Below, piece by piece: positions 1-63,722 of a stretch of 64,000 bases of DNA; position 1 is the stretch's first letter; every line of letters starts with the position of its first letter. Origin of the DNA: Isurus oxyrinchus (Eukaryota). Where the stretch lies: assembly GCA_026770705.1 (NCBI GenBank), contig JANJGN010000002.1, forward strand, positions 228,222,001 to 228,286,000. Reading direction: 5' to 3'. A model generated the notes under the pieces. It saw only the letters and a program-made list of their open reading frames with translations, was not told the DNA's origin and did no database searches. The position numbers were made by a program, and so were the translations under genes.

Positions 1-797
1 CTCTCAACCAAAAGATGCTAACTCCAACCGTTCACTCCTTCAATACTGAACCAGAGGTGTAAGCTGAGATTTTTCTTCTCAAGAACTCTAAGCCCACAAC
101 CTTTGGACTCAGAGTCAGAGTAATACCCACTGAGCCAGGAAATTGGGTGACATGAACACATTTGCACATTGTGTAGTTCACCAAGCCCTTCGATCAGGTC
201 TCTTCTTTGTGATCAATGCTTACATTTGTGTGCATGTGCATATGTGTATACCATTGATTCTCAATGTTTTGATATCACTTCCACACATTGATAGTAGTGT
301 GTTAGTACTTTTGCACCTGCTTTGCAGGGTGTATGTGCTGTATCTGCATGAAGAGATAGGAGCTAGATAAGGATTGTGTCCGTTCCTTTTTGCACAAGCT
401 TATCTCACTGCAACATACTTAGCAGCTTGACAAAGGAAACAGCTTGGGAGACTGTGGGTAGAAACCACTGCCCATATTCCAGGAAGAAGTGTCAGGTTTT
501 TTTTTCTTGCAATACCAGATGCAGCAATCAGATTAGCAATAAGGTCATGCGCAACGTGCCTCTTGATTGGTCGAATTGGTATGGTATGTTCAAGTTGGTT
601 TAAAAAACAAAAGTTGAGGAGTTGCAAGTTTCAATGAAAGTCCATTGGCGTTTTAGGTTTCCAATCTTTTCCATGCCTCATAACCATTGACGCTGCTGGG
701 CCGTTTGTACGTTTTATGATCTTCCCCAAACTTATATGCTGTCAAAGTGAAACAAAAGTCAGGCTGCAAAAATAAAAGATACATTCGAAACTGCCGG

Positions 798-2612: not shown

Positions 2613-3029
2613 TAGGGAGAGGTGATGGTGCTAGGGTATTGTTGCTGGGCTAATAATCCAGACAGCCAGGGTAATGCTCTGGGGAGCCAGGTTCGAACCC
2701 CACCATGGCAGTTGGTGGGATTTCAATTCCATAAAAATCTGGAATTAAAAGTCTAATGGTGATCATGGAACCTTGTCGATTGTTGTAAAAACCCATCTCG
2801 TTCGGTAATGTCCTTTAGGGAAAGCAATCTGCCATCCTTACCTGGTTTGGCCAACACGTGACTCCAGACCCATAATTCTTAAATGCCCTCGGAAATGGCC
2901 TAGCAAGCCCCTCAGTTGTAACAAACTGTTACAAAGTCACAAAAAAGGAATGAAACTGGATGGACCACCCAGCATTGACCTAGGCAGCAGAACCAACATC
3001 AGCAATCACAGCCCTGTCAACCCCGAAAA

Positions 3030-5570
3030 GTCTTCCTTACTAACATCTGGGGGCTAGTGCAATAATTGGGAGAGCTGTCTCACAGACTAGACAAGCAACA
3101 GCCTGACATAGTCATCTTCACAAAATCATACCTCACAGGTAATGTCCCAGATACCACCATCACCATTCCTGGGTATGTCCTGTCCCACTGGCAGGACAGG
3201 CCCAGCAAGGGTGGTAGAACAGTGGTATACAGTCAGGAGGGAGTTGCCCAGAGGGTCCTCAACATCAACTCTGGACCACATGATGTCTCATGGGCAAGGA
3301 AACCTCCTGCTGATTACCACGTACTGCCCTCCCTCAGCTATTGAATCAGTACCCCTCCTTGTTGTACACTACTTGGAGCAAGCACTGAGGGTGGCAAGGA
3401 CACAGAATGCACTCTGGGTGGGGGAACTTCAATGTCCATCACCAAAAGTGGCTTGGTGGCACCACCACTGACCAAGCTGGCCGAGTCCTAAATGTTATAG
3501 CTGTTAGACTGGGTCTGTGGCAACAAGAGGGAAAACATGCTTGACCTCATCCTCACCAACTTGCCTACCGCAGATGCATCTGTCCATGAGAGTATCGATA
3601 GGAGTGACCACTGCACAGTCATTGTGGAGATTAAGTCCTGCCTTCACATTGAAGATGCTCTCCATCGTGTTGTGTGGCACTACCACCATGCTAAATGGGA
3701 TAGATTTTGAAGAGATCTAGCAACTCAATACTGGGCATCCATGAGGCATTGTGGGCCATCAGCAGCAGCAGAATTGTACTCGAACACAATGTGTAACCTC
3801 ATGGCCCGGCATAGCCCCCACTCTACCATTACCATCAAGTCAGGGGATCAATCCTGGTTCAATGAAGAGTGCAGGGGGGAATGCCAGGAGCAGCACCAGG
3901 CAAACCTAAAAATGAGGTGTCAACCTGATGAAGATATAACACAGGACGATTTGCATGCCAAACAGCAAGAATGGGCAGGGCTAAGCAATCCCTCAGCCAA
4001 CAGATCAGATCTAAGCTCTGTAGTCCTGCCACATCCAGTCGTGAATGGTGGTGGACAATTAAACAACTCGAGGAGGAGGCTCCACAAATATCCCCATTGT
4101 CAATGATGGAGGATCCTAGTGCATCAGAGCAAAAGATAAAGCTGAAGCATTTGCTACAATCTTCAGCCAGAAGTGCTGAGATGATGATCTATCTTGGCCT
4201 TCTCCGGAGGTCCCCAGCACCACAGATGCCAGTCTTCAGCCAATTCAATTCACTCCACGTGATATCAAGAAATAGCTGAAGGCGCTGGATATGACAAAGG
4301 CTATAGGCCCTGACAATATTCCGACAATAGTGCTGAAGACTTGTGCTCCAGAACTTGTCAGACCCCTAGCCAAGCTGTTCCAGTACAGCTACAAAACTGG
4401 CATCTACCCAGCTATGTGGAAATTTGCCCAGATATGTCCTGTATACAAAAAGCAGGACAAATCCAACCCAGCCAATTACTGCCCCATCTGTCTACTCTCG
4501 ATCATCAGTAAAGTAATGGAAGGGGTCATCAACAGTGCTATCAAGCAGTTCTTTCTTAGCAATAACCTGCTCACTGATGCCCAGTTTGGATTCTGCCAGG
4601 GCCACTCAGCTCTGACCTCACTACAGCCTTGGTTCAAACATGGACAAAAGAGCTGAACTCCCGAGGTGAGGTGAGAGTGACTGCCCTTGACATCAAGGCA
4701 GCATTTGACCAATTGTGGCATCGAGGAGCCTTAGCAAAACTGGAATCAATGGGAATCAGAGAGGAAACCCTCAGCGAGTTGGAGTCATACCTAGCACAAT
4801 GGAAGGTGGTTGTGGTTGATGGAGGTCAGTCATCTCAGCTCCAGGACATCACTGCAGGAGCTCCTCAGGGTAGTGTCCTCGGCCAAACCATCTTCAGCTG
4901 CTTAATCAATGAACTTCCTTCCATCATAAGGTCAAAGGTGGGGATGTTCGCTGATGATTGCACAATGTTCAGCACCATTCACCACTCCTCAGATAGTGAA
5001 GCAGTCCATGTCCAAATGCATCAAGACCTGGACAACATCCAGGCTTGGGCTGACAAAGGGCAAGTAACATTCGTGCCACATAAGTGCCAGGCAATGACCA
5101 TCCCCAACAAACGAGAATCCAACTATCGTCCCTTGATGTTCAATGGCATTACCATCACTGAATCCCCCACTATCAACATCCTGGATGTTACCATTGACCA
5201 GAAACTGAACTGAACTAGCCATATAAATACTGTGGCTACAAGAGTAGGTCAGAGGCTAGGAATCATGCAACGAGTAACTCACCTCCTGACTCCCCAAAGC
5301 CTGTGCATCATCTTCAAGGCACAAGACAGGAGTGTGATGGAATATTCCCCACTTGCCTGGATGAGTGCATCTAACGCTCAAGAAGCTTGACACTGTCCAG
5401 GACAAAGCAGCCCGCTTGATTGGCACCACATCCACAAACATTCACTGCCTCCACCACTGACACACAGTAGCAGCAGTGTGTAACATCTACAAGATGCATT
5501 TCAGGAATTCAGCAAGGCTCCTTTGACAGCACCTTCCAAGCCCACGACTACTATATTCCAGAAGGACAGT
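3030..5570 (+). pseudogene. Disrupted EN-RT ORF of LINE family A
   Basis: ORF-track pieces 3066-3344, 3741-4106, 3971-4279, 4291-4656 and 4629-5213 tile one EN-RT protein across frameshifts. Confidence 0.9.
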
Positions 5571-5583
5571 CGAGAGATGGGAA

Positions 5584-5698
5584 TAGAGTCATAGAATTAC
5601 AGAGATCTACAGCACAGAAAAAGGTCTTTTGGTCCATCGAGTCTGCGCTGGCCAAACAAGTACCAAACTATTCTAATCCAATTTTCCAGCACTAGGTC
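5584..5698 (-). mobile_element. CR1 (family B) 3' tail nested in LINE A
   Basis: Reverse complement of the tail at ~22715-22830. It interrupts LINE A sequence that is contiguous in the other copies. Confidence 0.8.
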
Positions 5699-6179
5699 CA
5701 CCTGGAAGTTCCCCTCCAAGTCATTCACCATCCTGAGTTGGAAATGTATCGCCATTCCTTCACTGTCGCTGCGTCAAAATCCTGGAATTCCCTTCCAAAC
5801 AGCACTGTGGGTGTACCTACACCACATGGACTGCAGTGGTTCTAGAAGGCAGCTCACCACCACCTTCTCAAGGGCAATTAGGATGGGCAATAAATGCTGG
5901 CCCAGCCAGCAAAGCCCACATGAATGAGAAAAAAATATATAGCTTCCAGTACACTGAGTCCGACTGACAATCTTAAATTGGATGTCAGCGTAATTCTTAG
6001 CACACTGAGGATTATCTACCAAATGTTGTCCAGTCACAGAATCACATCTAATGTTAGACGGTGTGTTTTGAGTTTTGCAAGCAGGAGCTGGTTGGGTACC
6101 TTGGTCCTTGCGAACAGCTTTGACAAAAAAAACTTCTCTTTTTACAGCAACACATAACCCGTTCGGGTTCATTAACAAA

Positions 6180-16895: not shown

Positions 16896-19800
16896 ACTGG
16901 AGGAGGAGGCTCCACAAATACTTCCATCCTCAACGATGGGGGAAGCCCAGCATTTCAGTGCGAAAGATAAGGCTGAAGCGTTTGCAACCACCTTCACCCA
17001 GAAGTGCCGAGTGGATGATCCATCTCAGCTTCCATCTGAGGGCCCCGGAGTCACACATGCCAGTCTTCAGCCAATTCGATTCACTCCGTGGGCGGAATTT
17101 TCCCTGCCCGCTGGTGGCATGACAACAGGGCGGGAAGGCCAAATTTCAGTTGAACACCATCGCAAAACGGGTTTGCAAACGTCTGCTCCGCCCGTCACGG
17201 GTGGGATGACTTTCCCACCGCTGCACATTGGGAACTTCATTGTAATCCATCCGCATATCAGTGCAAGCCCAGTTTGCCGGAATCATCCTTCCTCGCTGGA
17301 TCACCCGAGCATGTCGGCAAGATTGCATGCCAACGTCTTTCACAACTGAACATAAGCGACGTGCACTTGGCGAGCTGCACTTCACTCGGGCCTTGTTTAC
17401 CAACCTTGCTTCAGGCACCATTTGTGGTCATCAGCGCCAGGCTTCGCAGGCAGCACCACATCGCTTTAAGGGGGGCTCACGGGCAGGTCCCTACTTATGA
17501 AACCAGCTGTGAGGTGGGGATGGCTTTACCACTGCTGCAAGGCTATGGCTTGCTTGGGGAAGAGGGAGAATTGGCCTCAGGCAAGGGATGAGACTGCAGA
17601 GCTAGGACATAACTGGGGAAGGAGGGTATCCCAGGATGTGTGTGTGGGGGGCACGTGTCGATCTGCGCAAATGGCCTTAAGAGGGTGAGGGCTGAGGAGG
17701 CAGTCTCCAGAGGAGATGAAGCTAGATGGAGATGTGAGGGTGTGTGTGAGAAAATGGGTGGTGGTGTCCCTTGAGCTGCAGCGAGTGAGGTGCCAGTGAA
17801 TGTGTGATGGGCTTGCGAGTGTGTGAATTTAGAGTGATGAAATAGTTGCCTTACCCTGGTGGCATGGATAAGATAATTCATGCATTTTCTGCATTGGATG
17901 GTCAACCTCTTCTGTGCAGTGTTGGCACTGACCATCTCTGTCACCACCTCCAAAGCTGGGGTGGTGACACCAATGGGCTCCCTGAAGCCAGAGCAGAGGT
18001 AGAGGACGTTGTGGCAGGCTCCAATGGTGTCCAGAGGTGTCCCAGGGATGTGTCACAATCGGGTGGCTGCAATCTTCTCGCCTTTCGGGGCCGTGTCTTC
18101 TGTGCACCAGCCTTCCACTGGAAGCGCTGAGAGCTGTGTGTAGCTGCTCTCTACAGATGGTGCCTGGCGTGAGGAAGTGGCGAGGTGATGGCGTGGCGAG
18201 CGAATGAGAGCCCCATGCCACAAAACGACTTGTTTCCTAGGAATGCATGATCAATGAGGTGAGATTGGGATGAAAAGCCGCCATTGGGGCCAGCAGGGTA
18301 AAACATTCCTTTTCCTGCCTGCTACTGCACTTAGTGCAAACCTAGGACGATTCCACCCCATGTGATATCAAGAAAAGGATGAAGGCACTGGGTACTGCAA
18401 ATGCTTTGGCCCTGACAACATTCGGGTATAGTACGGAAGACTTCTGCTCCAGAACCAGGTGCGCCTCTAGTCAAGCTGTTCCACTACAGCTACAATGCTG
18501 GCATCTCCCTGACAATGTGGAAAATTGCCCAGGTGTGTCCATTCAACATAAAGTAGGACAGATCTAACCTGACCAATTACCATCCCATCAGCCTAATCTC
18601 GATCATCAACAAAGATGGAAGGGTCATTGACAATGCTATCAAGTAACACTTACTCAGCAATAACTTGCTCACAGACCTCAGTTTGGGTTCTGCCAGACCC
18701 ACTCAACTCCTGATGTCATTAGATCCTTGGTCAAACAAGGACAAAAGAGCTGAACTCAAGATGTGGGGGGAGAGTAACACTGATATCAAGGTAGCATTTG
18801 ACTGAGTGTGATCAAGGAGCCCTAGCAAAACTGGAGTCAATGGAGTCAGGGGAAAACCCTCCACTGGTTGGAATCTTGTCTAGCACAAAGAAAGATGGTT
18901 GTTGCAGGTCAATCATCTCAGTCCCGGGACATCGGTGCAGATGTTCCTCAGGGTAATGTCTTAGGCCCAACCATCTTCAGCAGCTTCATCAATGACCTTC
19001 CCTTCATCATAAGAAGTGGGGATGTTCGCTGATGATTGAACAATGTTCAGCACCATTCACAACTCCTCAGGTACTGAAGCAGTCTGTGTCCATATGCAGT
19101 AAGACCGAGACAACATTCAGGCTTGGGCTGAAAAATGGCAAGTAACATTTGCTCCACATAAGTGCCAGGCAATGACCATCTCCAACAAGAGAGAATCTAA
19201 CCATCACCCCTTGACATTCGATGACATTATAATCGCTGAATAACACCCTATCAACATCTTGGGGGTTACCATTGACCAAAACTGAACTGGACCAGCCAAA
19301 AAAATAATGACTACAAGAGCAGGTCAGAGACTGGGAATTCTGTAGAAACTCACCTCCATCTTGCCAAAGTCTGCCCACCATCTACAATGCAAAAGTCAGG
19401 AATGTGATGTAATACTCTCCAATTTCCTGGATATGTGTAACTGCAACAACACTCAAGAAGCTTTACACCATCCAGGACAAAGGAACCCGCTCGATTGGCA
19501 TCTCATTCACTATCTTAAACATTCACTCCCTCCCCCACTGAAGCACAGTGGCAGCAGTGTGTGTCATCAACAAGATGCACTGCAGGAACTCACCAAGGCT
19601 CCTTCAACAGCACCTTCCAAAACCATGACCTCTACCACCTCAAAGGACAGCGACAACAGATATATGGGAACACCACCATCTGCAAGCTCCCCTCCAGGCC
19701 ACACACCATCCTGACTTGGAAATATATCAATGTTCCTTTACTGTCGCTGGGACAAAATCCTGGAAATCACTTCCTAACAGCACCATGGGTGTACCTACAC

Positions 19801-19905
19801 CAGCTGGACTGCAGCGGTTCAAGAAGTTGGCTCACCGCCACCTTCTCAAGGGCAGTTAGGATGGGCAATAAGTGCTGACCCAGCCAACGACACCCACATC
19901 CTGTG
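16896..19905 (+). mobile_element. 5'-truncated LINE family A, interrupted at 17090-18358
   Basis: Collinear with 4070-5925, with RT motifs (MFADD) and the tail. Confidence 0.9.
17090..18358 (-). mobile_element. Non-autonomous Harbinger derivative with Myb-like exon 1
   Basis: TIR gggcggaattttcc / ggacgattccaccc and 3-bp TSD CGT/CAT. Minus strand encodes VSANTAQKRLTIQCRKCMNYLIHATR|gtaagg. Confidence 0.8.
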
Positions 19906-22990: not shown

Positions 22991-23961
22991 TCCCAGGAGG
23001 GTGACATATTCGATGAGATCATTAGGATTGGGGGAATACATTTTCAAATTCCCGCCTATTTTATAATTTATATCTCGGATCTATACAGAGATGACACTAA
23101 TTTCTATGTGTGTAACAGGTTTAATTCAGTGCTTTTTTAAAATGTTTGCTACATGCTTCTCGCTCATGCTTCCAGCTCTTTTTAACAACTTTGTTTACTT
23201 CTCCCTGAGTCCACACCCAGGCTTAACCAATCAAAAACAGTGAGCATTGATAGTAAACAGACTCACTTAATCAAACACAGAATAATTCAACAATTGACCA
23301 CTACGCCACCCAGGTGTGTCTCTGGAACCTCTGTAATCCTCCATGGACAGGCACGATTCCCTTTAAATAACCTGAGAAGATCACCCACCCAAGATAATAA
23401 AGGAAACAGGAGCCATGGATGGATGGTCCTCGCAAATTTCAGGGAAACTCAAGCATAGTCTGGACTGTCTCCTTGCTCTGCTGCCTGGAAATGTTATGCT
23501 TTCCAGGTTAACATGTATATGGACATTTTGGAGTGGTGGCCACTGACCTGCAACAAGAAGCCTGTGCCAGTTGTCTTGGAGCAATATCAACACTTTCTTT
23601 TTGAAGGGCTGGACAATTGTCAGCCTTTCCTTTTCAAATGCCAAAAGCCGAAATTTTCTCGTGTAATTGGAAAAAAAAGGATTGCATTCATGTAGTGCCT
23701 TCTACCTTCATGATCTCAGGACATCTCAAATTGCTTTACAGCCAATGAAATACATTTGATGTGTAGTCACCATTGCAATGTAGAAAACAAAATACTAACA
23801 AAATGCAAGTGAGTAGGTATACAAAGGAAACTGATAATTGTGAGATTCCTGAATTTCATATTCCTCATACTATGTAAGGGCTTTTGAAACTTATGAGCCT
23901 TTAAAATCCAAGCATTTGTTTTGTCAAAGGTAGAAGATCAGGAGGTTTTTTTTTTATAAAT

Positions 23962-24307
23962 GTACTTTTTCACAGGATGTGGGTGTCACTGGAAAGGCCA
24001 GCATTTATTGCCCTTGAACTGAGTAGCCTGCCACATTGCTGTGGATCTGGAGCCACATGTAGACCAGACCAGGCAACAACAGCAGATTTACTCCCCTAAA
24101 GGGCATTAATGAACCAAGTCGGTTTTTGCTGCAATTGATGATAGCTGTCTGGTCACCATTACTGAGGCTAGCTTCATAATTCCAGATTTATTAGTTGAAT
24201 TTAAATTCTAGCTGCTGTGGTGGAATTTGAACTCATGCCTTCAGAACATTAGCCTGGGTCTTTGGATTACTAGCCCAGTGACTGTAACACTACGCTACCA
24301 TCTCCCC
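23962..24307 (-). mobile_element. tRNA-head SINE sharing head and tail with LINE A (junction variant 2)
   Basis: Minus strand has a tRNA-like head, the shared body, and junction ctcagtt|caagggcaataaatgctggcc. Confidence 0.8.
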
Positions 24308-25077
24308 AAACTAATCACAGAGCTATTTTCCTGAAATCTGTGAATAGCATTCATTCCTGGTCCCTATAGCTCTGGTTATCTTAAGAACTGCTTTCTAAGT
24401 GGGTTGGGAGCGGGCAATGTAATGCCTGTTTACTAAGTTATATTCGCTGGTGATGTTATCAAACATACATGTGTTATGCTATCACCCTTTTAAGGAAAAA
24501 GCACATGTAAACTGAAGCTTTTTTTAAAAAAATTGTGTTGATTCAGATTTGGGAATTGGCCAGTAGTGCATCTCTATAACATTCAATCAAATGCATTGTA
24601 ATGATATTACTATCCATAGTCATCGAAATGGCTAAATGGAAAGTAGTTGAATTTAAACTTTACACTATAAACCGTGGAAAAAAAAATCTTGTACTGAATA
24701 ATTCACCGTCCACCATGTCCCCATCCCCCAACGCCCCTCACTCACTGCCCCATCTACAGTATAAAGCAGTAAAGCTTATTTCAAAGAATTTCAGTAATAA
24801 GCAAGTTCCATATTTTTAGTGTTCTGGGAAAGGATGAGTTATAAGGGAAGTGGATGACAATAAAGTGCATGTAGTTTGGGAATTGAGGAGGAACAGGCGA
24901 GGGAGGTTTAGTATTGAGAACAGTCAATGATTGTTAATAATCACTTGATGTCCACAGTGTGCTAGGGCCTGCATGGTTTAATTCTAAACGATGAAGAATT
25001 GAGGTCTCACCTCTCACCTCTAACCTCTCTTTTCTTTCCCACTGAAGTAATTTCAATTTTGTTATCAGTATTCCCTA

Positions 25078-30257: not shown

Positions 30258-31706
30258 TGGCCATGGAAATGTGTTGGATGTCATCTTCCAAAATTCTGTA
30301 GATTCTGGAACAGTCCCAGCAGATTGGAGGGCGGCAAATGTAACCTCATTATCTAAAAAAGGAGGGAGGGAGAAAACAGTGAATTACAGGCTGGTTAGCT
30401 TAACATCAGTTGTAGTGAAAATGCTAGAGTCTGTTATAAAGGATGTAATAACAGGACACTTAGAAAATATCAGTGGGATTAAACAAAGTCAACGTGGATT
30501 TATGAAAGGGAAATCATGTTTGACAAGCCCACTGGAGTTTTTTGAGGAGGTAACTAGCACAATAGATAAGGGAGAACCAATGGATGTGGTGTACTTAGAT
30601 TTTCAGAAAGCTTTTGATAAAGTCTCACTTAAGACATTAGTGTGTAAAATTAAAGCACATGGGACTAGGGGTAATATCTTGTGAGCGACAAGGAGGGTGT
30701 GAAAGGACTTCAAGGTGGTTCAGACAGGTTGAGTGACTGAGCAAATACATGGCAGATGCAGTATAACATGGTTAAGCGTGAAGTTATCCACTTTGGTAGA
30801 AAAACAGAATAGCAGAGTATTATTTAAACAGTGATAGGTTGGGAAAAGTTGATGTACAAAGAGACGTGGGTGTCCTTGCAAACCAATCATTGAAAGCAAG
30901 CATGCAGGTGCAGCAAGGAGTTAAAAAGGCAAATGGTATGGTGACTTGCATTGGAAGAGGACTTGTATACCGTAAGGATGTCTTACTGCAGTTGTGCAGG
31001 GCCTTGATGAGACCACACCTAGAATCTTGTGTGCAGTTTTGGTCTCCTTACCTAAGATAGGATATACTTGCCATAGAGGGAGTGCAGCGAAGGTTCACCA
31101 GACTGATTCCTGGACAGCAGGATTACCGCATGAGGAGGGGTTGGGCCGACTAGGCCTGTATTCACTGGAGTTTAGAAGAATGAGAGGAGACCTCATTGAA
31201 ACATATAAAATTCTGACAGGCATGGACAGGCTGGATGCAGGGATGATATTTTCTTTCACTGCGGGGGGGTCTACAAAAAGGGGTCACAGGCCCAGGATAC
31301 AGGGTAGGCCACTTAGGACTGAGATGAGGAGAAACTTCTTCACTCAGAGGGTGCTGAAACTATGGAATCTCTACCACAAAAGGCTGTGGAGGCCAAGCCA
31401 CTGAATATATTGAAGAAAGAAATAGATAGATTTCTGGACTATAACGGCATCAAGGGGCAAGGGGGGGGAGCACGAGATAACGGTGTTGAGATAGAGGAGC
31501 AGCCATGATTATATGGAATAACAGAGCAGGCTCGAAGGGCCGAATGACCTACTCTTGCTCCTATTCTCTATCTTCCTATGTTTCTAAGTCAGGAAGGCTT
31601 GAGACTTGGAAAGGAATTTTGGAGTGATGGGGGTTAAAGGGAACAATACTGTTTGTTCAGTGGTGCATAGATTCACCAGTCCCAGCGAGTGTAATTTTTA
31701 CCATAT

Positions 31707-33970
31707 GGGGCTAGATTTCTAACTTTGAGGCAGGTAGCGGGAGTTGAGGAAATGCCCAGTTCGGCCAGCCTGCCTTGGAGAAAGTGCCCGCAAGGGTGGA
31801 TTTCCATTGTGGGGGTGGGTGGTGGTGGGTGTTGGGTCAGCTGACCCAGCAAAAAATTTCGGAGGCAACCACAAGGGCTGCCGGGCACGGAGGTGGGCTG
31901 TTTAAGCGGCCTGACTCTGTGCCGTGGATCTTCATCTCAGTTAAAATAAAAACAGAAAGACCCTCCAGCCCTCACCCCTCACACCCTCTCACTCCCCACA
32001 CATTCCCCGTTCCCATCTATTCCATTTCATGACCCCCACCCAAACCTTTTGGTCCCTCATTCCCCCCCCACCCCCATACCAAGCAACGCCATCTAAGAAC
32101 CCTTATGGCACCTCATGCACCCCTCATTCCAAGCTATGACACTTCCTTGCCTATTCAGTGCAGTTACAGGACTGGCATCCAAGTGGCAAAGTGGAAAATT
32201 GCCCAGGTATGCCCTGTCCACAAAAATCAGGACAAATCCAACCCAGCCAATTGCCATCCCATCAGCCTGCTCTTGATTATCAGGAAAGTAATGGAAGGGG
32301 TCATCAACAGTGCTACCAAGCAGCACTTACTTAGCAATAACCTGCTCACTGATGCCCAGTTTGGATTCCGCCAGGGCCACTCAGCTTCTGACCTCATTAC
32401 AGCCTTGGTTCAAACATGGTCAAAAGAGCTGAATTCCTGACGTGACATGAGAGTGACTGCCCTTGACATTAAGGCAGAATTTGAGTGAGTGTGGCATCAA
32501 TGAGCCTCTGGAAAACTGGAGCCAATGAGGATCGGGGGAAAACTCTTCACTGGTTGGAGTCATACCTAGCAGCAAAGAAGATGGTTGTGATCGTTGGAGG
32601 TCAATCATCGCAATTGTAGGACATCACTGCAGGAGTTCCTCAAGATAGTGTGCTGGACCCAACTATTTTCAGCTGCTTCATCAATGACCTCCATTCCATC
32701 ATAATGTCAGAAATGGGGATGCTCGCTGATGATTGCACAATGTTCAGCACCATTCACAGCTCCTCAGATACTGAAGCAGTCCATGTTCAAATGCAGCAAA
32801 ACCTGGTCAATATCCAGGTTTGGGTTGATAAGTGGCAAGTAACATTTGTGCCACACAAGTGCCAGACAATGACCATCTCCAACAAGAGAGAATCTAACCA
32901 TTGCCCCTTGGCATTCAATGGAATTACCATCACTGAATTCCCCACTATCAACATCCTGGGGGTTACATTAATCAGAAACTGAACCGGACTAGCCATATAA
33001 ATACTGTGACTGCAAGAGCAGGTCAGATCCTAGGAATCCTGTGATGAGTAGCCCACTTCCTGACTCCGCTTGTCCACCATCTACAAGGCACAAGTCAGGA
33101 ATACGAGTGAATACTTTCCATTTTCCTGGATGAGTGCATCTCCAACAACACTCAAGAAGCTTGACACCATCCAGGACAAAGCAATCCAATTGACTGGCAC
33201 CCTATCCACAAACATTCACCCCCTCCACCACCGAGGCACCTTGCCAGCAGGGTATACCATCTACAAGATGCACTGCAGGAATTCACCAAGGCTCCTCAGA
33301 CAGCACCTTCCAAACCCACAACCACTGCCATTTAGAAGGACAAGGGCAGCAGATACGAGAAAGCCACCACCTGGAAGTTCCCCTCCAAGGCACTCACCAT
33401 CCTGATTTGGAACTATATCAAGTTCCTTCTCTGTCGCTGGTTCAAAATCCTGGAATTCCATCCCAGTACTTTGGGTGTACCCACAGCACATGAATTGCAG
33501 TGGTTCAAGAAGGCAGCTCACCACCTTCTTAAGGGCAATTAGGGATGGGCAATAAATGCAGGTCTAGCCAGTGAAGCCTACATCCCACGAATGAATACAA
33601 AAAATTGCCCTCTATACATTATATAGAACCAGTGAATCCTATACTGACAATAGCATGTATAAAACAATCCTTAAGATAAACAGTTATTAATTAATCATTT
33701 TCTTTAGAAAATCACCATTGAAAATGTCAATCATCCAGATTCTTTAATGTTTTAAAGGTTGAAACTGCAAACACTTGAAACTTCTTTATCTTGCAAAAGT
33801 AAATATTGTGATACTGACAGCATAGATCAGAGAGCCAGAGCTGTCAATCAAGCAATGTTTTCTCTGGGGCTAAGGCATTTCAACAGGTTAATGGATTTCT
33901 GGGCTCTCAGCCAAGCCTCATTATGTATTATTGGCTGAGGGCCCACACATCCATTAGAGTGCTAAAACAT
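31707..33970. mobile_element. Unclassified TIR-type element interrupted by LINE A
   Basis: Starts ggggctagattt. The C-rich tract and ctgtcaatcaa motif also occur in 15525-16665. Confidence 0.4.
32155..33604 (+). mobile_element. 5'-truncated LINE family A
   Basis: KWKIAQVCPVHKNQDKSNPAN..DAQFGFRQGHS, LADD and the tail. Confidence 0.92.
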
Positions 33971-37400: not shown

Positions 37401-38909
37401 TTTTTTGACTTGCTTTTGTTCCCTTTGTCTCCTTGCTCCTGTCGTCCATTCTGGTTACATGACCAGCTTGCCAAAAAAAAAACTTATCTATGTTTGGGTC
37501 AAAGTCAACTTCACAGGCTGCTTTTTTCAGCAAAGACCTGAAGATGCATGCAGCTGTGTCAACAGCGTCAAAACTTTGGTGTAATCTCCATCTCCGACAG
37601 GAAATGAATGCTGATAGACAAGCTGATTGGCTCTCAATGAGCAGAGTGTGATAGGGCAAGCAAGCTCAGCCCTGAACTTGCTACCATAAGAAGTAGTTGA
37701 GGTAACCAACATAGATGATTCAGGGGGAAAGCTAAATAAACACATGAGGAAGAAAGAAATAGTAGATTATGCTAATAGGGTTCGATGAAGAGGGGCGATT
37801 GGAGGCTCATGTGGAGCATGAATGCTAGCAGAGAGCTAACACTGGGGGCGTAGACTATAGGCCCCCTAACAGTAGCTATACTGTAGGGCAGAGAATAAAT
37901 CAGGACACAATGAGGGAATTTAAGAAAGGCAGTACATTAATTATGGGTGACTTTAATCTTCATGTAGATTGGGAAAATAAAAATGGCATAGGTAGCCATG
38001 AGCAAGAGTTCATAAAGTGTATTTGGGACCGTTTTCTAGAATAATAGGTTATGGATCCAACTGGGGATCAGCCTATTTTGGATCTGGTAATGTGTAATGA
38101 GGCAGGTTTAATAGATGATCTCAAAGTTAAAGATCCCCAAGGAAACAGTGACCATAACACGGTAGAATTTAGCATTCAGTTTGAAGTGATAAAATTGGGT
38201 CAGAAACAATTGTGCTGAACCTAAATAAGGGTAATTACAAAGGAATGAGGGCAGCTTTAACTGGAGTGGACTAGGAAAGGAGTTTTGCAGAAAAAACGGT
38301 TGATGAACAAGGGCAGATGTTTAAGAAAATAATTCACGACTCCCAACAAATATATATCCCAGTGAGGAAAAAGGATTCTAGGACTGTGATAAACTAACCA
38401 TAGTTAAGCAAGGAAGTTAAGGATAGTATCAAATTGAAAGAAAAAAAAATACAATGTGGCAAAGATTAGTGGTAAACCAGAGGATTGGGAAAGTTTTATA
38501 AAACCAACAAGAGATGATCAAAAAAATATTAAAGAGGGAGAAAATAAACTTTGACGGTAAACTAGCATGTAATATAAAAATGGACAGTAAGAGCTTCTTT
38601 AAATATATAAAAAGGAAGAGAGAGGCCAAAGCGAACATAGGCCCCTTAGAGAATGAGGCTGGGGAAATAATAATGGGGAACGAGGAAATGTCAGAGAGGT
38701 TGTATCTTTGCATCAGTCTTTATGGTCGAAGACACTTATAGCACACCAAAATTACTAAATAATCAAGAGGCAAAAGAGGAGAGGAAATGAATTCCAGAAC
38801 TATCACTAGAGAAAAAATACTAGGGAAACTTACGGGGCTAAAGGCTGATAAACCCCTGGACCTGATGGGTTGCATCCTAGGATATTAAAGGAAGTAGCTA
38901 CAGAGATAG

Positions 38910-39590
38910 CGGGGCCTGCTCACATAGACAGGGGGCGGGGCCTGCTCACCGACGCACAAAATGACGTGGGATGATGTCGGGGAGAACCCCCCGATGTCAT
39001 CCCGCCCCATTTAAATTTTCAGGAAGGAGGGGGCGCAGCGAAATCAGCTGCTGGCCATTGACAGGATAATTAAAACAATTAAAGGACCTGCCCGTCCAAC
39101 CTTAAGGTTGGCGGGCAGGCCAGGAGCCCAGGCAGGCTTCTGAAAAAACATGAAACCTCATCCACCGGCGGGATGAGGTTTTATGTAGGGTTTAAAAAAC
39201 TTCTAAAAAGTTTTAGTGAAATTTATCAACATGTCCCATCTCGTGTGACATTGTCACATGAGGGGGACATATCAAGGATTTTTTTCCCTTTATTTTTAAT
39301 GTTTATGCAACTGTCAGTGATCTCCCTGAGGCTGCACTTAGCCTCAGGGAGATTTGTGCTCATTTGTGCGCATGCGTGAAAGAGTGCACTCTAGCTTTGA
39401 GCAAATGCCTCCCCCCCCACACCCACATAGGGAGTGCATAGCGCTTCCCACCAGGCATCATGCTGGGTGGGCCTTAATTGGCCCACCCACGTAAAATGGC
39501 GGCGGGGCCCGCTTCTCCGGCGGAGATTGGCTCCCTGCCCACCGGAGATTGTGTCGGGCCCACCCACTCGGTAGGCAGAAAATTCTACCC
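38910..39590. mobile_element. Multi-hairpin Harbinger-type MITE
   Basis: Ends ..gaaaattctaccc and has five internal palindromes. Homologous to the elements at 43283, 49078 and 63754. Confidence 0.8.
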
Positions 39591-41035
39591 TTGGATTCTG
39601 GAAAAGTCCCAGTGGATTGGAAAACTGCACTTATTCAAAAAGGGAGGGAGGCAATAAATAGCTAACTCTAGGCCAGTTAGCTTAACATCCATCATTGGGA
39701 AAATGTTGGAGTCCAGTATAAAGGATGTAATAGCAGAGAATCTAGAAATACATAATATAATTAAGCAGTGTCAGCATGGCTTCATGAAGGGGAAATCATA
39801 CCTGACAAATTTATTAGAATTCTTTGAGGAGATAACAAGCAGGGTCGATAAAGAAGAACCAGTAGATGTAATATATTTGGATATCCAAAAGATGTTTGAT
39901 AAGGTAACACATATAAGGCTATTTAATAAGATAAGAGCCCATGGTGTTGGGAGTTGTATACTAGCATGGTTAGAGGATCGGCTAACTAATAGAAGACAGA
40001 GAGATGGGATAAGGGGGGCATTTTCAGGGTGGCAACTTGTAACTAATGGAGCGCCACAGGGATCAGTGGTGGGATCACAATTATTTACAATATATATTAA
40101 TGACTTGGATGAGGGAAGTCGCCAAGTTTGTGGATTACACAAAAATAGGTGGGAAGGCAAGTGGTGAGGATGACACAAAGGGTCTGCAGAGGGATTTAGA
40201 CAGGTTAAATGAGTGGGCAAAAACTTGCAGATGGGATATAATTTGGGAAAATATGAGGTTATGCACTTTGGCAGCAAGAATAGAGGAGCTAAATATCTTT
40301 TAAATAGAGAAAGACTGCAGGAAGCTGCAGTGCAGAGGGATTTGGCAGTTCTTGTGCATGAATCCCAAAAAGCTAGCATACTAGTACAACAGGAATAGGG
40401 AAGGTAAATGGAATGTTGGCCTTTATTTCAAAGGGAATGAGTTATAAAAATGGGGAAGTCTTGCTAAAACTATACAAGGCACCAGTTAGACCACACCTAG
40501 AATACTGTGAACAGTTTTGGTACCGTTGTCTAAGGAAACATATACTGGCATTGGAGGCAGTCCAGAGAAGGTTTACTAGGTTGATTCCAGGTATGGAGGG
40601 ATTTTCTTATAAGGAGAGGTTGAGTAGGTTGGGCCTGTGCTCATGGGAGTTTAGAAGAATGAGAGGCGGCCTTATTGAAATATATAAGTTCGTAGGGGCT
40701 TGACAGGGTAGATGCTGAGGGGTTGTTTCCCCTTATGGGAGAGTCTAGGACCAGAGGGCATAATCTCAGAGCAAGGAGGTCACCCATTTAAGACAGAGAT
40801 GAGGAGGAATTTCTTCTCTCAGAGGGTAATGAATCTGTGGAATTCTTTACCACAGAGGGGAAGCTGGGTCATTAAGTGTATTCAAGGCTGAGATAGACAG
40901 ATTTTTAATCAGTCAGGGAATCAACGATCATGCAGAAAAGGCAGGAGAGTGGAGTTGAGGGTTATCAGATCAGCCATGATCTCATTGAATGGCGGAGCAG
41001 ACTTGATGGGCCGAATGGTGTACTCCTGCTCCTAC

Positions 41036-47019: not shown

Positions 47020-47810
47020 TAACAGATGCAAGTAACTTTTGTGTGTCACACAAAATAATGACCATCTCCAACAAGAGACTTTCAATGGTGTTACCATCGC
47101 TGGATTCCCCACTATCAATAAGCTGCTGGTGACTACTAACCAAAAAATGAGCTGGACAAGCCATATAAATACTGAGGCTATATGGACAAGTCAGAGACTG
47201 TGTGAATTCTGGGGTGAGTAGCACCTCCTGACTTGATTCAGGTACTGGTGTGGGGTGTGAACACATTACCTTCTAACTCAGAGGCAGGCAAGCTACCAAC
47301 TGAGCTAAACTGACAATAGCAGAGTGGAAGGTTTAATCCCTCCCAATAACTGAACAAGGTTGCAATTTGTTACCTCTCTGTAGTTACCCTGGGAAGGTCA
47401 ACCACCACAGTCCTTGTGGCGATGATGTTCCCACAGTGGCGTTAGGTAGGGAATTCGGAAATATTGACCCACTGATGATGAAAGAACAGAGTGATACATG
47501 TTCATGTCAGGATGCTATATATGTCTTGGAAGGGAATTTGGAGACAATAGTGTTCCCATCTCACAGGAGTTCTTGTCCACCTCACTGTTAGAGGTTTCAG
47601 GAAGGTATCAGCACCTGTTGTGCTGCTATGCATCTTGTACTTTCTGCATAGTGTAGCCATAGTGCATTGGCAAATTAGAGGGAGCAAATTTTGAATCCTG
47701 GGGCAGAGGCATTGTTAATGCAAACTTGGATGGCTCCAAGTTTCTTGGCCATTATTGCAACTAGACTGCAGGTGAGCAGTGAATAGCTGTTCATACTCCT
47801 GACTTTGGGA
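47020..47810. mobile_element. Old LINE A-related fragments (47020-47235 on +, 47400-47810 on -)
   Basis: atgaccatctccaacaagag..cccactatcaa matches 5095-5290. Confidence 0.65.
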
Positions 47811-48659: not shown

Positions 48660-49850
48660 CACATGCAAGTAACATTTGCATCACACAAGTGCCAGGCATT
48701 GACCATCGTCAGCAAGAGACAATCTAACCATCTCCCCTTGACATTCAATGGCATTACCATCACTGAATACCCCATTATCAACATCCTGAGGGTTACCATT
48801 GACCAAAAATGAACTGGACTAGCCATATAAATGCTGTGACTACAAGAGCAAGTCGGAAACTGTGAATCCTGTGGTGAGTAACTTGCCTCCTGACTCCCCA
48901 AATCCTGTCCGCCATCTGCAAGTCACAAGTCAGGAGTCTGATGGAATACTCTCCACTTGCCTGGATGAGTGCAGCTCCAACAACACTCAAGAAGTACAAC
49001 ACCATCCAGAACAAAAGAGTCCACTTGGCACCCCATCCTTCAATTTAAACATTCTCTCCCTCCACCACTGACACACAGGCCAGAATATTGCTGTTGGCGT
49101 GCAGGCCCGACGCGCAAAATGACGCATGGTGACATCGGGCGTGTGTCATTTAGACATTTTGTTCAGCGGGTGGGATGAGGTTTCTTGAAGCTTTTATTAA
49201 TTAAATGGAAAAAATGTCCTAAATATATAAACATGTCCCAGCTCAAGTGACACTGTCACATGAGAGGGCATGTTTAAATAATTTTGTACTTTATTTTTAA
49301 TAAAATTTTTTTATCAACTCAATCTCCCTGAGGCACGGAGCTGCCTCAGGGAGATTGCTGTGCGAAAGAGCGCAGACCCCCGACTCTCCCTCCAGCCCCT
49401 GCCCCGTACAGGTAGCGCGCTACCGGCCGTGCGTCACAGGCGGTGATCGGCTCCATGCCCACCCTGGCCCAGCCTGCCCGACCTAGCCACAGTGGCAGAG
49501 CCGTGCACCAAGTGCTAAGATGCACGGCAGCAACTCATCAAGGCTCCTTCAACTTCCAAACCAGTGACCACTACCACCAGGAAGATCAAGGGCAGCAGAT
49601 GGATGGGAATACCATCACTTGCAAGTTCCCCTCCAAGGCAAACACCATCCTGACTTGGAGCCATATCACCGTTCCTTCACTGTCGCTGAATCAAAATCCT
49701 GGAACTCCCATGCTAACGGCAGTGTGGGTGTACCTACACCACATGGACTGCTGCGGTTCAAGAAGACAGCTCACCACCACCTTCTCAAGGGCAATTAGGG
49801 ATAGGCAACAAACACTGGCCTTGCTCATGACGCCTACATCCTGAGTAAGA
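48660..49850 (+). mobile_element. LINE family A 3' fragment with nested MITE
   Basis: Collinear with 5060-5925. Confidence 0.9.
49078..49488. mobile_element. Internally deleted multi-hairpin MITE
   Basis: ACA TSD at 49075-49077 and 49489-49491; removing the element restores LINE A gacacacagt. Confidence 0.82.
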
Positions 49851-49869: not shown

Positions 49870-50048
49870 AAAGCGAAATACTGCAGATGCTGGAAATTTG
49901 AATTAAAACAGAAAATGCTGGAAAAACTCAACAGGTCTGGCAGCCTCTGAAGAAGAGTCATATGGACTCAAAATATTAACTCCATTCCTCTCTTTACAGA
50001 TGCTGCCAGACCTGCTGAGCTTTTCCAGTATTTTCTGTTTTTATTCAA
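49870..50048. mobile_element. Miniature Penelope foldback with hammerhead remnant
   Basis: Inverted arms ~49899-49945 and ~50000-50048. The loop has CTGAAGA-a-gagtc-atatg-gactc-AAAA. Confidence 0.75.
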
Positions 50049-51588: not shown

Positions 51589-52137
51589 TGACAGCGTATG
51601 CTGTCAGGGTATTCAACTGTTGGTGTAGTGGGATGAGGGAAATAGAGTTGGTGTAAGGTATCCCAAAAAAACCCCATCATTCTTGACCTTACATCCACAA
51701 ATCAACATTTGAGGCAGGAATTACAGGATTATAACATGGAGCAGGCAGCCTAGTCAAGTGTAGTCCTCCTGACTAGTTTTGGAGTCATTGTTTCTAAATG
51801 GATTATGGTCTGATGTCCAAGCTTGAAATAGAAGAAACGAGAGGGAGGCTTTAATATTTAATTGTATGTTCAAAGTGAATTTTGTTGCAATTTTGCAGAG
51901 CTTTCACCATTTTTACCCAGCTTGCTGCGGACCCTTATTTTGTGTTACAACTACATTTCCCAGCGTTGTTTTGCGCATTACCTGAGTTCATAAAAAATAG
52001 CCATCGATTGAAAATACCAGTTAAATTGCTCAATGCAGAGCTCTTAACCTTGAGGTGGCTATGGTAACCTGATACTGGCAAAATAGTACACTTGTCTATT
52101 GGCCTTTATTTCCAGTTATTCCTTTTTTGAGTCCAGA

Positions 52138-52415
52138 AACAGCAGATGGTAGAATTTGAATCCAATAAAAAAATCTAGAATTAAAAGCCTAATGATGACC
52201 ATGAAATCATTGCTGATTGTTGTAAACACCCATCTGGTTCACTAACGTCCTTTAAGGAAGGAAACCTGCTGTCCTTAACTGGTCTGGCCTATGTGTGACT
52301 CCAGACCTACAGCAATGTGGTTCACTTTTAAATACTCTCTGAACGAGGGCAATTAGGGACGGGTAAGAAATGCTCACTGAGCCAGTGATCCCACATCCCA
52401 TGAACGAATAAAAAG
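52138..52415 (+). mobile_element. 5'-truncated SINE sharing head and tail with LINE A (junction variant 1)
   Basis: Body matches 2705-2894; junction ctctgaa|cgagggcaattaggg. Confidence 0.85.
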
Positions 52416-53784
52416 AAATGGATTTATTCATTAACACGTTACCCATTTACTTTAAACATCTCAGCTAAAACAACGTTGGAACATTGGAAAAGGAACGGGT
52501 CATTTCGCCCCTTGAGCCTGCTGTGTCATTCAATAAGATCGTGAACTACCTACACCTTAACTCCATTTATCCACCATTGAACATCCTTCTCGAACAAAAA
52601 TCTATCAACCTCTGTCTAGGATGCTCTAATAGTCCCCCAGCATCCACAGCTTTTTGGAGAGGGAATTCCAGATTTCCATTCCCCTCGATGTGAGGACATG
52701 CTTCCTGGTTTCTTCTAAACAGCCAACTCTGGTTTTAGGATTATGCCCTTCTTGTTCTTGGTTCCCGCTTCAGAGGAAATAGTTTCTCTATGTCTACCCT
52801 TTCAAATTCTTTTATTGTTTTAAATGCCTCAGTGAGATCACCCCTCAATCTCCAATACTCAAAAGAATACAAGCCAAGTTAATACAGCGGCCCTCACAAT
52901 TTAACCCTTGTACTTGAAGAGCTGTCAAAGGCATTTGGGCTGATTTTCAACTTGCTGAAAAGCCAAGATGAAAATTGCATAGTTTTATAACAGGTGGCCA
53001 ATCCATAATGCCAGTTTTATGCCCAGGTGACATGATGAATTATTAATGTTTAACCACCTGTATAACCACAAGTTATGTTTAGGAATTGCTGACAAAATAA
53101 ATCACTCATCATAAAATAGTATTGAAAACAAACAAACAAAAAGTCTTGTTTTAAATTGCCACAAAAGCCTTATTAATCTTCTTCACAAGATGGCTGCTTT
53201 AGGAACTTCTATTGTAATTATTCTGCTCCTTCGGTTAACAGGCAACTCTTCACAATTGGGCTTTGATCCAAAGCAAAAGTAGATCAATATTATTTAGTCT
53301 CATCTGATGAATATTAAATGAAAATCATGCTTTACAGGGAGGTTGGATGCAAACAGAAGTATATAGCACAGAAGGAGACCATTTGACCCACTGGATCCCC
53401 GCTGGTCTTTTGAAAGAGCTACCAAATTAATGTCACTCCCCTGCTTTTTTCCTGTAACCCTGCAAGTGTTTGGGGTATGGTACAAGTGCATCTCATTCAG
53501 AAATCAGATGACAGATTTGAGCAACAGTTGTGAAAATATCAACAGACGGGCCAGTTATCTATTGGCATGTGCTCAGCATATTGATATTTATGTCCATTTA
53601 TGCCAATTTTATGTTAGGATGCATTCTCATGAGATTGGGTGAATACTTGGGCATAACTTGACATCAGCAAAATGGGCATTCATTGTGTTTAACTTAAATA
53701 GGAACATAGGAATATAGGAACAGGAATAGGCCATTCAGCCCATCGAACCTGCTCCACCATTCAATAAAATCACAGCTGATCATC

Positions 53785-55500
53785 CAAGAAATGGCGGAGG
53801 AACTGAACAGGTATTTTGCATCAGTCTTCACAGTGGAAGACATGAGTGACATTCCCAAAGTTCAAGAGAGTCAGGGGGCAGAGGTGAGTACGCTGGCCAT
53901 TACCAAGGAGAAGGTGCTAGGAAAACTGAAAGGTCTGAAGGTGGATAAATCACCTGGACCCAGATGGATTACACCCCAGTGTTCTGAAGGAGGTAGCTGA
54001 AGAGATAGTGGAGGCGTTAGTGGTGATCTTTCAGGAATCACTGGAGTCAGGGAGGGTCCCAGAGAACTGAACAATTGCTAATGTAACACCCTGTATAAGA
54101 AGGGAGTGAGGCAAAAGACGGGAAATTACAGGCCGATTAGCCTGACCTCAATCGTTGGTAAGATTTTAGAGTCCATTATTAAGGATGAGATTTCAGAATA
54201 CTTGGAAGTGCATGGTAAAATCGGGCAAAGTCAGCATGGTTTCATCAAGGGGAGGTCATGCCTGACAAATCTGTTAGAATTCTTTGAGGAGGTAATGAGT
54301 AGGTTAGACATAGGAGAGCCAATGGATGTTATCTACTTGGACTTCCAGAAGGCCTTTGACAAGGTGCCGCACAGGAGGCTGCTCAGTAAGATAAGAGCCC
54401 ATGGTGTTAGAGGCAAGGTACTAGCATGGATAGAAGATTGGCTGTCTGGCAGGAGACAGAGAGTGGGGATAAGGGGGTCCTTCTCAGGATGGCGGCCGGT
54501 GACTAGTGGATTTCTGCAGGGGTCAGTGTTGGGACCACAACTTTTCACTTTATACATTAATGATCTAGATGAAGGAACTGACTGGCTAAGTTTGCAGATG
54601 ATACAAAGATAGGTGGAGGGACAAGTAATATTGAGGAGGTGGGGAGGCAGCAGAAGGATTTGGACAGGTTAGGAGAATGAGCAAGGAAGTGGCAGATGGA
54701 ATGCAACGTGGGGAAGTGTGAGGTCATGCACTTTGGTAGGAAGAATAGAGGCATAGACTATTTTCTAAATGGGGAAAGAATTCAGAAATCTGGAGTGCAA
54801 AGGGACTTGGGATTCCTAGTCCAGGATTCTCTTAAGGTTAACTTGTAGGTTCAGTCGGTAGTTAGGAAGGTATTTATTTTGAGAAGGCTAGAATGTAAAA
54901 GCAGGGATGTGCTGCTGAGGCTTTATAAGGCTCTGGTCAGAGCACATTTAGAATATTGTGAGCAATTTTGGGCCCTGTATCTCAAGAAGGATGTGCTGGC
55001 CCTGGAGAGGGTCCAGAGGAGGTTCACGAGAATGATCCCAGGAATGAAAGGCTTAACATATGAGGAACGTTTGAGGACTCTTGGTCTATACTCGATGGAG
55101 TTTAGAAGGATGAGGGGGGATCTGATTGAAACTTACAGAATACTGAAAGGCCTGGATAGAGTGGACGTGGGGAAGATGTTTCCATTAGTACGAGAGACTA
55201 GGACCCGAGGGCGCAGCCTCAGATTAAAGGGAAGACCTTTTAGAACAGAGATGAGGAGAAACTTATTTAGCCAGAGAGTGGTGAGTCTATGGAATTCAAT
55301 GCCACAGAAGGCTGTGGAGGCCAGGTCATTGAGTGTATTTAAGACCGAGATAGATAGGTTCTTGATTGGTTAGGGGATCAAAGGTTACAGGGACAAGGTG
55401 GGAGAATAGGGTTGAGAAATTTAATAGCCATGATTGAATGGCGGAGCAGACTCGATGGGCCGAATGGCCTAATTTCTGCTCCTATGTCTTATGGTCTCAT
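53785..55500 (+). mobile_element. Relatively young 5'-truncated CR1 (family B) inside an antisense CR1 tail (53700-53784 and 55505-55750)
   Basis: Long ORF pieces 54106-54612 and 54879-55373 with [22 protein letters not shown] and KFADD. Confidence 0.93.
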
Positions 55501-59045: not shown

Positions 59046-59834
59046 ATAAAGGATTAGACTTAGCACCCCTGAAGATGCATGTGGCAGGCAAAGCACATGC
59101 TTATATCTGTTTTCCATAGCTTGCTTTTCCTGGAGCAGGTCACTAACTGGAGACTATAGTTTGAAGGGGCACCACTCCATATCAAGCATAGCTGACCAAG
59201 AGTCTCCCCCATCCTTACAGGCAGCTATAAGCTTACAGGTTAATAATTAACCTGTTTGGCCACGTTATGTTCCTTGGCCACCAAGTCCTGAAGTGGGATC
59301 TGAACCCAGAGCTTCTGGCTCAGAGGCGGGAATGCTACCCACTGTGCCAACAGACCCCCTTACAAAAGACTCTATGGCACTATTTTGAAGAAATGCAGGG
59401 CAGCCCAGGCCAATATTTATCCTTCAAACATCCTCAATAAAAATAGATTTTCTGGTTATCGTCTCGTTGCAGTCCATGGGACCAAATTGGCCGCCATATT
59501 TCCGTTAGTACAAGGTAAAAAAAACTTTGGGTATGAAATGTGTTGGGCGTTCTAATATTCCGAAGATGCTTCCTGAAAGGTCTTTTTCCCTGTGACAGAG
59601 CGAGTTCCTATCTCTGTGCTATTTATTCAACCGCCTTCTGAATCAGTGTGCTCCTGAGTCATGTTGATCTGTCAGGTGCTGGATTCTTCCCTGCCTGTGC
59701 TAAATTAGCTGCTGGCAACTGCAGCAAGGGTGTTGCAATTGGCAGCAATATTCCTGCCCCAGGGGGCAGAAGAATCAGTTTCACTCTAATCACTTTCCGC
59801 CAAGCCGCGCAATTAAGATGGAACTAGAAAATGT

Positions 59835-63422: not shown

Positions 63423-63722
63423 GGGGAGGTGGTGGCATAGTGGTATTGCCACTGAGCTAGCAATCAAGAGACCCAGGGCAATGCTCTGGGGACCCAGGTT
63501 CAAATCCTACCAAATCTGCAATCAAAAGTCTATTGATGACCATTAAAAAACAATTGTCATAAAAACCCATCTGGTTCACTAATGTCCTTTAGGGAAGGAA
63601 ATCTGCCATCCTTACCTGGTCTGGCCTACATGTGTCTCCAGACCCACAGCAACGTGGTTGAATTTTAAATGCCCTCTGAACAAGGACAATTAAGGATGGG
63701 CATTAAATGAATGAATGAAAAA
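63423..63722 (+). mobile_element. Full-length tRNA-head SINE = LINE A head + LINE A tail
   Basis: A box TGGCATAGTGG at 63433-63443, B box GGTTCAAATCC at 63497-63507, junction gccctctgaa|caaggacaatta, (tgaa)n tail. Confidence 0.88.

Follow-up and report, generated by a model that had tools for sequence, protein, structure and literature searches.

A single-ORF shark LINE bearing a tRNA-derived head, with a SINE partner that lacks the ORF: a candidate for transcription by RNA polymerase III

The stretch analysed here, called the window below, comprises 64,000 nucleotides of Isurus oxyrinchus (GenBank assembly GCA_026770705.1, contig JANJGN010000002.1, positions 228,222,001 to 228,286,000 of the forward strand). 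At 2615-5935 of its + strand lies an element in which a tRNA-derived head, a body of the type found in short interspersed nuclear elements (SINEs), a frame coding for an endonuclease and a reverse transcriptase, and a short tail follow one another in this order. This anatomy is real. The best explanation, which we advance tentatively when it is taken as a whole, is that 2615-5935 represents a single copy, full-length but dead, of a shark long interspersed nuclear element (LINE) that is very abundant, is of the CR1/L2 kind and has a single open reading frame (ORF), and whose RNA would be made by RNA polymerase III (Pol III). The CR1/L2 assignment is a probable one, drawn from the tail type and from the literature on shark SINE partners. 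An initial annotation of this DNA had described an ORF1-less LINE with a Pol III-type head that nearly avoids runs of TTTT, and had proposed selection for read-through by Pol III; its observations proved largely right, and its interpretation was supported in part. The features of the element are the following:

2601-2616, + strand: 5' limit of the head, uncertain.
2615-2710, + strand: tRNA-derived head; the A-box region, near 2626-2637, is degenerate, and the B box, 2690-2700, is perfect (ARAGORN; alignment with SINE copies from 2614).
2711-2894, + strand: SINE-type body, common to the free SINE copies; 12 bases are missing after 2872 in this copy.
2895-3026, + strand: stretch behind the SINE break, with candidate starts at ATG 2895-2897 and ATG 2950-2952 (three-frame translation).
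3027-3917, + strand: decayed endonuclease region of the APE type (tblastn of the proteins P0016, P0020 and P0006).
3705-3708, + strand: lone sense-strand TTTT outside the nested insert; no other copy in the window covers the site.
4075-5372, + strand: reverse transcriptase region (Pfam RVT_1 at 4578-5210, E 6.7e-20; tblastn).
5377-5881, + strand: C-terminal part of the ORF, split by a nested repeat (P0016 residues 829-890 at 5377-5544).
5583-5700, no strand assigned: nested short repeat of about 118 bases, foreign to the LINE family, holding two TTTT.
5869-5935, + strand: 3' tail common with the SINE, namely the last codons, the stop, a 3' untranslated region (UTR) some 50 bases long and, at 5929-5935, an A run (loose-end consensus of contigs behind 5921).
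5879-5881, + strand: stop codon TAG, seen in four of four family copies.

The head was identified by ARAGORN, whose sole call in the window is a tRNA-Ile-like gene at 2622-2710, and by the B box GGTTCGAACCC at 2690-2700, which matches the B-box consensus, GGTTCGANNCC, and is the sole such match in the window (0.18 expected; at least one match in 18 of 100 shuffles); the tRNA-derived head with a perfect B box that the initial annotation had seen was thus confirmed. The Rfam tRNA model gave no match on the head at E up to 1, and the fold z-score of the head, -0.15, is no better than that of shuffles, so that these results, taken with the ARAGORN call and the B box, indicate a decayed tRNA-derived head, as in SINEs. 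A perfect A box (consensus TRGCNNAGTGG) had been reported at 63433 in a sister copy; the box is indeed exact, at 63433-63443, but the copy that carries it is a SINE and not a LINE. In the window as a whole, exact A-box matches number seven, against 1.1 expected by shuffling, and this surplus points to several more SINE heads of tRNA origin. The element may truly begin up to 14 bases upstream of 2615; the roughly 13 bases before the head (2601-2614) resemble 24306-24320 on the - strand, beside a SINE copy. About seven upstream ATGs were read from the sequence of the 280-base 5' UTR.

Behind the body, a single long coding region follows. Endonuclease homology starts at 3027-3030 with only 280-335 bases upstream, which leaves no room for an ORF1, as had been claimed from an endonuclease motif reached by about 3030. 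Three full-length relatives of 941-983 amino acids carry Exo_endo_phos or Exo_endo_phos_2 together with RVT_1 domains; the match to P0016 begins with its residue 25 (window 3027) and that to P0020 with its residue 28 (window 3030), and the alignment is colinear to residue 890 of 962 at 5544 (tblastn). In a sister copy at 19377-19847, residues 804-958 of the 962 of P0016 are aligned. Since the relatives align from residues 25-28, the match on the sister copy runs nearly to the C-terminus and the stop is present in four of four copies, the ORF of the LINE is complete. The full-length relatives examined are 39-40% identical; those protein matches that exceed 60% identity are either fragmentary or belong to a chimeric model. 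P0151-P0154 are 68-79% identical to window 3066-3341. In the whale-shark gene model P0154 (EukProt), residue 1 falls on ATG 2895, and a single frame continues from there into the endonuclease, as far as 3293. In the window copy ATG 2895 stands in the endonuclease frame, but three stops in that frame come after it within 2895-3026, along with local frame shifts. P0153 indicates a one-base loss near 3030 in the window copy and supports the frame of ATG 2950 upstream of 3030. Either start would require one private indel in some copy and would give a protein of about 940-960 amino acids, like the relatives. At E 0.01, Pfam recognised none of the endonuclease pieces of the window copy, which is decayed. 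Near the other end of the ORF, the nested repeat at 5583-5700 has further copies at 22828-22711 and 41229-41184 (both - strand), and contigs in four of four sequencing runs skip 5539-5698. The tail holds a sole AATAAA, conserved, at 5889-5894, about 35 bases before the A-rich 3' end.

The head and body recur in four further copies of the window (63423, 52130, 24305 on the - strand and 61739), 64-80% identical to the element by BLAST and nhmmer, and the nhmmer matches of head plus body end at query position 281, that is, at window 2895. These copies are:

63423-63720, + strand: free SINE copy, element 2614-2894 joined to the tail, with the perfect A box at 63433-63443.
52130-52425, + strand: free SINE copy, 5'-truncated, with the same break as in 63423 (2894 joined to the tail).
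23950-24305, - strand: further SINE copy belonging to the group; its tail junction is longer or of another form.
61739-62610, + strand: older head-bearing relative, with head and body at 61739-62011, an insert at 62012-62502, and a part at 62503-62610 that follows the element across 2894|2895 to about 2960.

The free copies 63423 and 52130 match element 2614-2894 and resume at about 5869, the SINE copies aligning to 5863-5945; in copy 24305, a short stretch before the tail is attributable either to 2907-2920 or to the LINE 3' region near 5830. The 5' break directly precedes ATG 2895-2897, the 3' break is found 10 bases short of the stop, and a short CT-rich microhomology is found at both break points. 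The same joint of the SINE, from 2872 to 5885 with 39 letters between, is present in contigs of three of the four runs. By its sequence, the partner SINE thus corresponds to the LINE without its ORF, namely the 280 bases of 5' UTR joined to the last few codons and the 3' UTR, and the joining of 2614-2894 to about 5869-5935 gives it the 5' plus 3' structure by which bipartite deletion derivatives are recognised. No other copy of the LINE 5' region was found in the window, where all other copies of the LINE family begin at 4065 or later.

It is likely that the fusion of head and LINE is a trait of the family and not a one-off chimera, in which case most full-length copies would carry the head. 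Indeed, the relative at 61739 tracks the element rather than the SINE at the break: in register, 19 of 24 bases agree (P 5e-5); the local score is 37, against 16.2 +/- 3.0 in shuffles, none of 2000 being as high; and 31 of 41 bases match across the junction, where the window background reaches 23 at most. Furthermore, base 2993 is covered by 101-123 contigs in each of three DNA runs and by 24 contigs in X15, a run guessed to be RNA; coverage was counted per contig, a measure not usable as copy number, and the assembled contigs carry neither RNA ends nor strand. The contigs at 2993 carry another letter than the window and extend up to 80-86 letters to the contig end, so that roughly 2907-3079 is a high-copy contiguous stretch. 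The head and body reaching 2960 in two copies and the stretch from 2895 onward into the endonuclease in many form an overlapping chain. Copy 61739, the whale-shark model P0154 and the contigs over 2993 together argue that the fusion is probably not unique to the locus; its uniqueness was among the findings that the initial annotation had named as refuting its proposal. In at least two shark organisms the LINE family occurs in huge abundance, and the whale shark has it as well. Protein searches with an 82-residue frame spanning the head-LINE junction gave no candidate, and those with residues 1-45 of P0154 returned P0154 alone. The upstream flank (2400-2614) is high-copy too: in the DNA runs, positions 2486 and 2519 are covered by 85-128 contigs.

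The second feature of the element is its paucity of TTTT, the run that would end transcription by Pol III, and this paucity is real and specific to this LINE family. Outside the insert at 5583-5700, which adds two, the element holds one TTTT, at 3705; none was counted in the family copy at 18354-19905, and the two in 32155-33604 are private, both being absent from sister copies. In these three respects the counts made by eye in the initial annotation (which gave the second copy as 18359-19905) agree with ours. They do not agree for 48660-49850, said to be free of TTTT, where five were found, all inside a stretch of about 540 bases that is not alignable to the element. Mononucleotide shuffles of the element without the insert gave 6.0 TTTT expected (P 0.014 for the one observed), while the AAAA runs, which had been called common, are indeed present (16-17) but are simply at shuffle expectation (15-16.5). 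Four copies of the LINE family together hold 3 TTTT in 5,834 bases against 7.2 by dinucleotide shuffles, whereas the window's other LINE families, correctly described as rich in TTTT, hold in five fragments 15 in 3,032 bases against 13.9. TTTT is thus about ten times rarer per kb in this LINE family than in the others, and the window average is 6.1 per kb. Synonymous-codon shuffles of the in-frame pieces of the four family copies gave 5.96 +/- 2.0 expected against 2 observed (P 0.038), and those of the other LINE families 12.5 expected against 16 observed. The proposed check of phenylalanine codons gave TTC 31 : TTT 13 in this LINE family against 13 : 34 in the other families, and third codon positions in this family are 32% C.

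These features allow a mechanism to be proposed. The head and body would be the LINE family's own 5' module and promoter; the internal A/B-box promoter would direct Pol III to initiate at the first bases of the head, and the nearly TTTT-free ORF would let Pol III read through to the tail. The resulting RNA would be inefficiently translated and would be reverse-transcribed without ORF1 protein, the tail common to LINE and SINE being the part recognised by the LINE reverse transcriptase. As a promoter of the A/B-box type is independent of the sequence downstream, Pol III would be expected to initiate on headed LINE copies in the same way as on the SINE. In LINE-1 assays, according to the part of the study at hand (PMC2666806), Pol III transcripts need no ORF1 protein and only ORF2 protein, and the absence of ORF1 here is consistent with that requirement. 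That Pol III is the productive polymerase for the 3.3-kb RNA is nevertheless a possibility to be held with reserve. The fullest form of the proposal, an autonomous protein-coding retrotransposon with its own tRNA-derived Pol III promoter, about 3.2 kb transcribed, TTTT purged, ORF1 dispensable and a SINE derived by loss of the ORF, is rather doubtful.

A number of results speak against this reading. When dinucleotide composition is kept, the element without its insert is expected to hold 3.2 TTTT, and the one observed is no longer a significant deficit (P 0.13); the copies pooled in the codon test are related and not independent, so that its P values are generous. The contention that TTTT depletion goes beyond composition therefore holds in part: codon and dinucleotide usage accounts for most of it, and the remainder, about threefold, is borderline. 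This copy has a TTTT, at 3705, within the would-be Pol III unit, and an exact A box is absent from 2615-5935, the element's own A box being degenerate and, as said above, its head finding no Rfam match. Uncapped Pol III RNA is a poor messenger, and the conserved AATAAA of the tail also fits 3' processing of an RNA polymerase II (Pol II) transcript. The copy is dead through many stops and frame shifts, and no intact protein of the LINE family was found among 1.84 billion representative sequences. No target duplication was found around 2615-5935, the best shared word being 5 bases (P 0.84). With regard to the fusion, the similarity of copy 61739 fades near 2960 and is followed by unrelated DNA rather than LINE, so that this copy might represent a subfamily of SINEs whose body is longer; none of the 32 listed contig pieces, of more than 1 million, bridges 2872-3040; and the evidence on head-LINE junctions covers the window and the overlapping chain.

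Almost as likely as the Pol III model is a version in which the family keeps its architecture but owes the 3.3-kb RNA to Pol II, which would either start at an internal promoter within the 5' UTR or arrive by read-through, and Pol III makes the SINE alone. The head would then be retained with the module or for another role, such as definition of the 5' end or binding of ribosomes or proteins, and the low TTTT count would result from C-rich third positions. The lowered expectation under dinucleotide shuffling, the 32% C at third positions and the placement of the sole AATAAA in the conserved tail all agree with this; single-ORF L2 LINEs function without a tRNA head (PMC1636434, in the part at hand), and autonomous LINEs and their bipartite derivatives are taken as Pol II-transcribed in the portion of PMC5786205 that was available. 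Against it, the A/B-box promoter would fire on a headed LINE as it does on SINE copies, TTTT is still about threefold below the synonymous-codon null while AAAA is at expectation, and the upstream ATGs of the 5' UTR are ill-suited to cap-dependent scanning.

It is improbable that the headed copies are non-propagating chimeras, formed when the reverse transcriptase switched, once or repeatedly within about 2895-2960, from near the 5' end of the LINE RNA to a SINE RNA. Small-RNA/LINE-1 chimeras are well known, being unique and non-propagating (bioRxiv 10.1101/2025.02.02.635956, as far as its available part goes), and copy 61739, head-bearing and LINE-less, nevertheless carries 2895-2960. However, the SINE part here is without a tail of its own, the LINE part is complete to the start codon and not randomly truncated, and one and the same break recurs in the SINE deletion and in copy 61739; moreover, the tRNA parts in the LINE-1 study are, in what could be consulted of it, mostly half-length and antisense. 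The SINE joint, the start of P0154 and the passage of copy 61739 across the break make a SINE-LINE chimera confined to this locus less likely.

That a 3'-truncated SINE and an unrelated LINE simply adjoin one another is very unlikely: no target duplication marks the two as a unit and the genome is crowded with both repeats, but the junction falls exactly at the body/tail break of the SINE, beside a complete ORF start, recurs in copy 61739, and has no SINE tail between the parts or behind 5935. A LINE nested inside a SINE, or inserted target-specifically, was ruled out by the lack of any SINE remainder behind 5935; in the window, no SINE or tail sequence was found there, and the flanks of the element, looked at as an empty-site test, have no other copy.

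Among known elements, UnaL2 of the eel and ZfL2-2 of zebrafish are the closest in plan, and both are reportedly about 3-4 kb long. These L2-clade LINEs possess, as described in the part of PMC1636434 at hand, one ORF for endonuclease and reverse transcriptase, no ORF1, and a short tail that is common with tRNA-SINEs (UnaSINE1-2 in the eel) and required by the reverse transcriptase. The statement of the initial annotation that CR1/L2 LINEs normally carry ORF1 is for this reason too broad. In those described L2 LINE/SINE pairs the 3' tail alone is given as shared (same part of PMC1636434), whereas here the SINE shares the whole tRNA-headed 5' UTR, 280 bases of the LINE 5' end, as well. In cartilaginous fishes, SacSINE1 and CmiSINE, with L2-2_CM, similarly combine a tRNA head, a conserved body and an L2-type tail (PMC5499810 and PMC3747384, in their available parts), and the SINE of the window, compared by description, probably belongs to the same group. 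For SacSINE1 and CmiSINE, the available part of PMC5499810 reports LINE homology at the tail alone and mentions no headed LINE. The genuinely chimeric U6/LINE-1 and tRNA/LINE-1 elements also have a small Pol III RNA fused 5' of a LINE, but in the part of the report at hand (bioRxiv 10.1101/2025.02.02.635956) they are unique and have a truncated LINE, unlike the full sense head and body, complete ORF and recurring break found here. Taken together, single-ORF L2 LINEs and their tRNA-SINE partners are already known; a LINE with a tRNA-derived head is apparently new here, and it would be categorically new if Pol III transcription were shown. Among the papers listed in the literature search, no title or abstract describes a LINE itself starting with a tRNA-derived head; Repbase, Dfam and supplements were outside its scope, and a deposited consensus may exist.

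The ingi/RIME pair of trypanosomes is said to be an example of a bipartite derivative, a short element made of the two ends of a LINE. Such derivatives, in which the 5' and 3' ends remain and the coding part is deleted as in the SINE of the window, were treated by Kojima in 2018, with the Ingi clade among the producers (PMC5786205). The available part of that paper gives RTE and Vingi as the only clades whose 5' parts it found in SINEs, adds the small-RNA head to the SINE alone, upstream of the LINE part, and states that SINEs cannot encode protein; here, in contrast, the autonomous LINE itself is headed. By the same part, transcription of the target rRNA genes is probably what R1, R2 and R4 rely on (PMC5786205), and the present LINE would resemble them, as a proposal only, in having its template RNA made by a polymerase other than Pol II. 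In the window, a promoter-like module travels with the element and no remainder of a target gene follows its 3' end. R2 likewise has a single ORF, and its RNA is uncapped; it differs in taking the promoter of a host gene by inserting into the gene and in being released by a ribozyme.

In the classical view, LINEs are genes transcribed by Pol II, and SINEs are parasites that depend on Pol III and have nothing but the tail in common with a LINE. If the proposal holds, a LINE that begins with the tRNA-type promoter of its SINE would blur this division, and the SINE would have been born by loss of an ORF rather than by the chance fusion of a tRNA with a LINE tail. Kojima's set of LINEs whose 5' parts occur in SINE bodies would thereby grow beyond RTE and Vingi, and a conserved vertebrate SINE body would gain a LINE origin. 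It would also become testable whether Pol III can produce a working messenger longer than 3 kb in vertebrates, and with the family so abundant in at least two shark organisms and found in the whale shark, material for a decisive genome-wide test exists.

Several further observations were made in the window. The insert that splits copy 61739 (62012-62502, about 490 bases) is flanked by a 14-base target duplication, and its beginning is similar to the arms of a long palindrome (49921-50025), where on both strands Rfam gave matches to a model of a plastid 3' UTR, weak and at the level of chance. Over the window, no Rfam family reached its gathering score, and four weak, unrelated matches were obtained at E up to 1; a histone 3' UTR stem-loop at 31377-31425 (+ strand) scored 20.9 bits (gathering score 34; E 0.38). 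The remaining exact A boxes include 127-137 (- strand), 23298-23308 (- strand), 47317-47327 (+ strand), 59339-59349 (- strand) and 63449-63459 (- strand). Fragments of other LINE families lie at 30283-30681, 37856-40113 and 54091-55367 (+ strand) and at 60807-61316 (- strand); their sense strands contain 13-15% C and about 5 TTTT per kb, and use TTT over TTC for phenylalanine. Five of five scans for this shark DNA in contigs of metagenomes, prokaryote genomes and viruses gave no match, and in one run, the coral metatranscriptome X20, 7% of the words sampled from this stretch of shark repeats are present.

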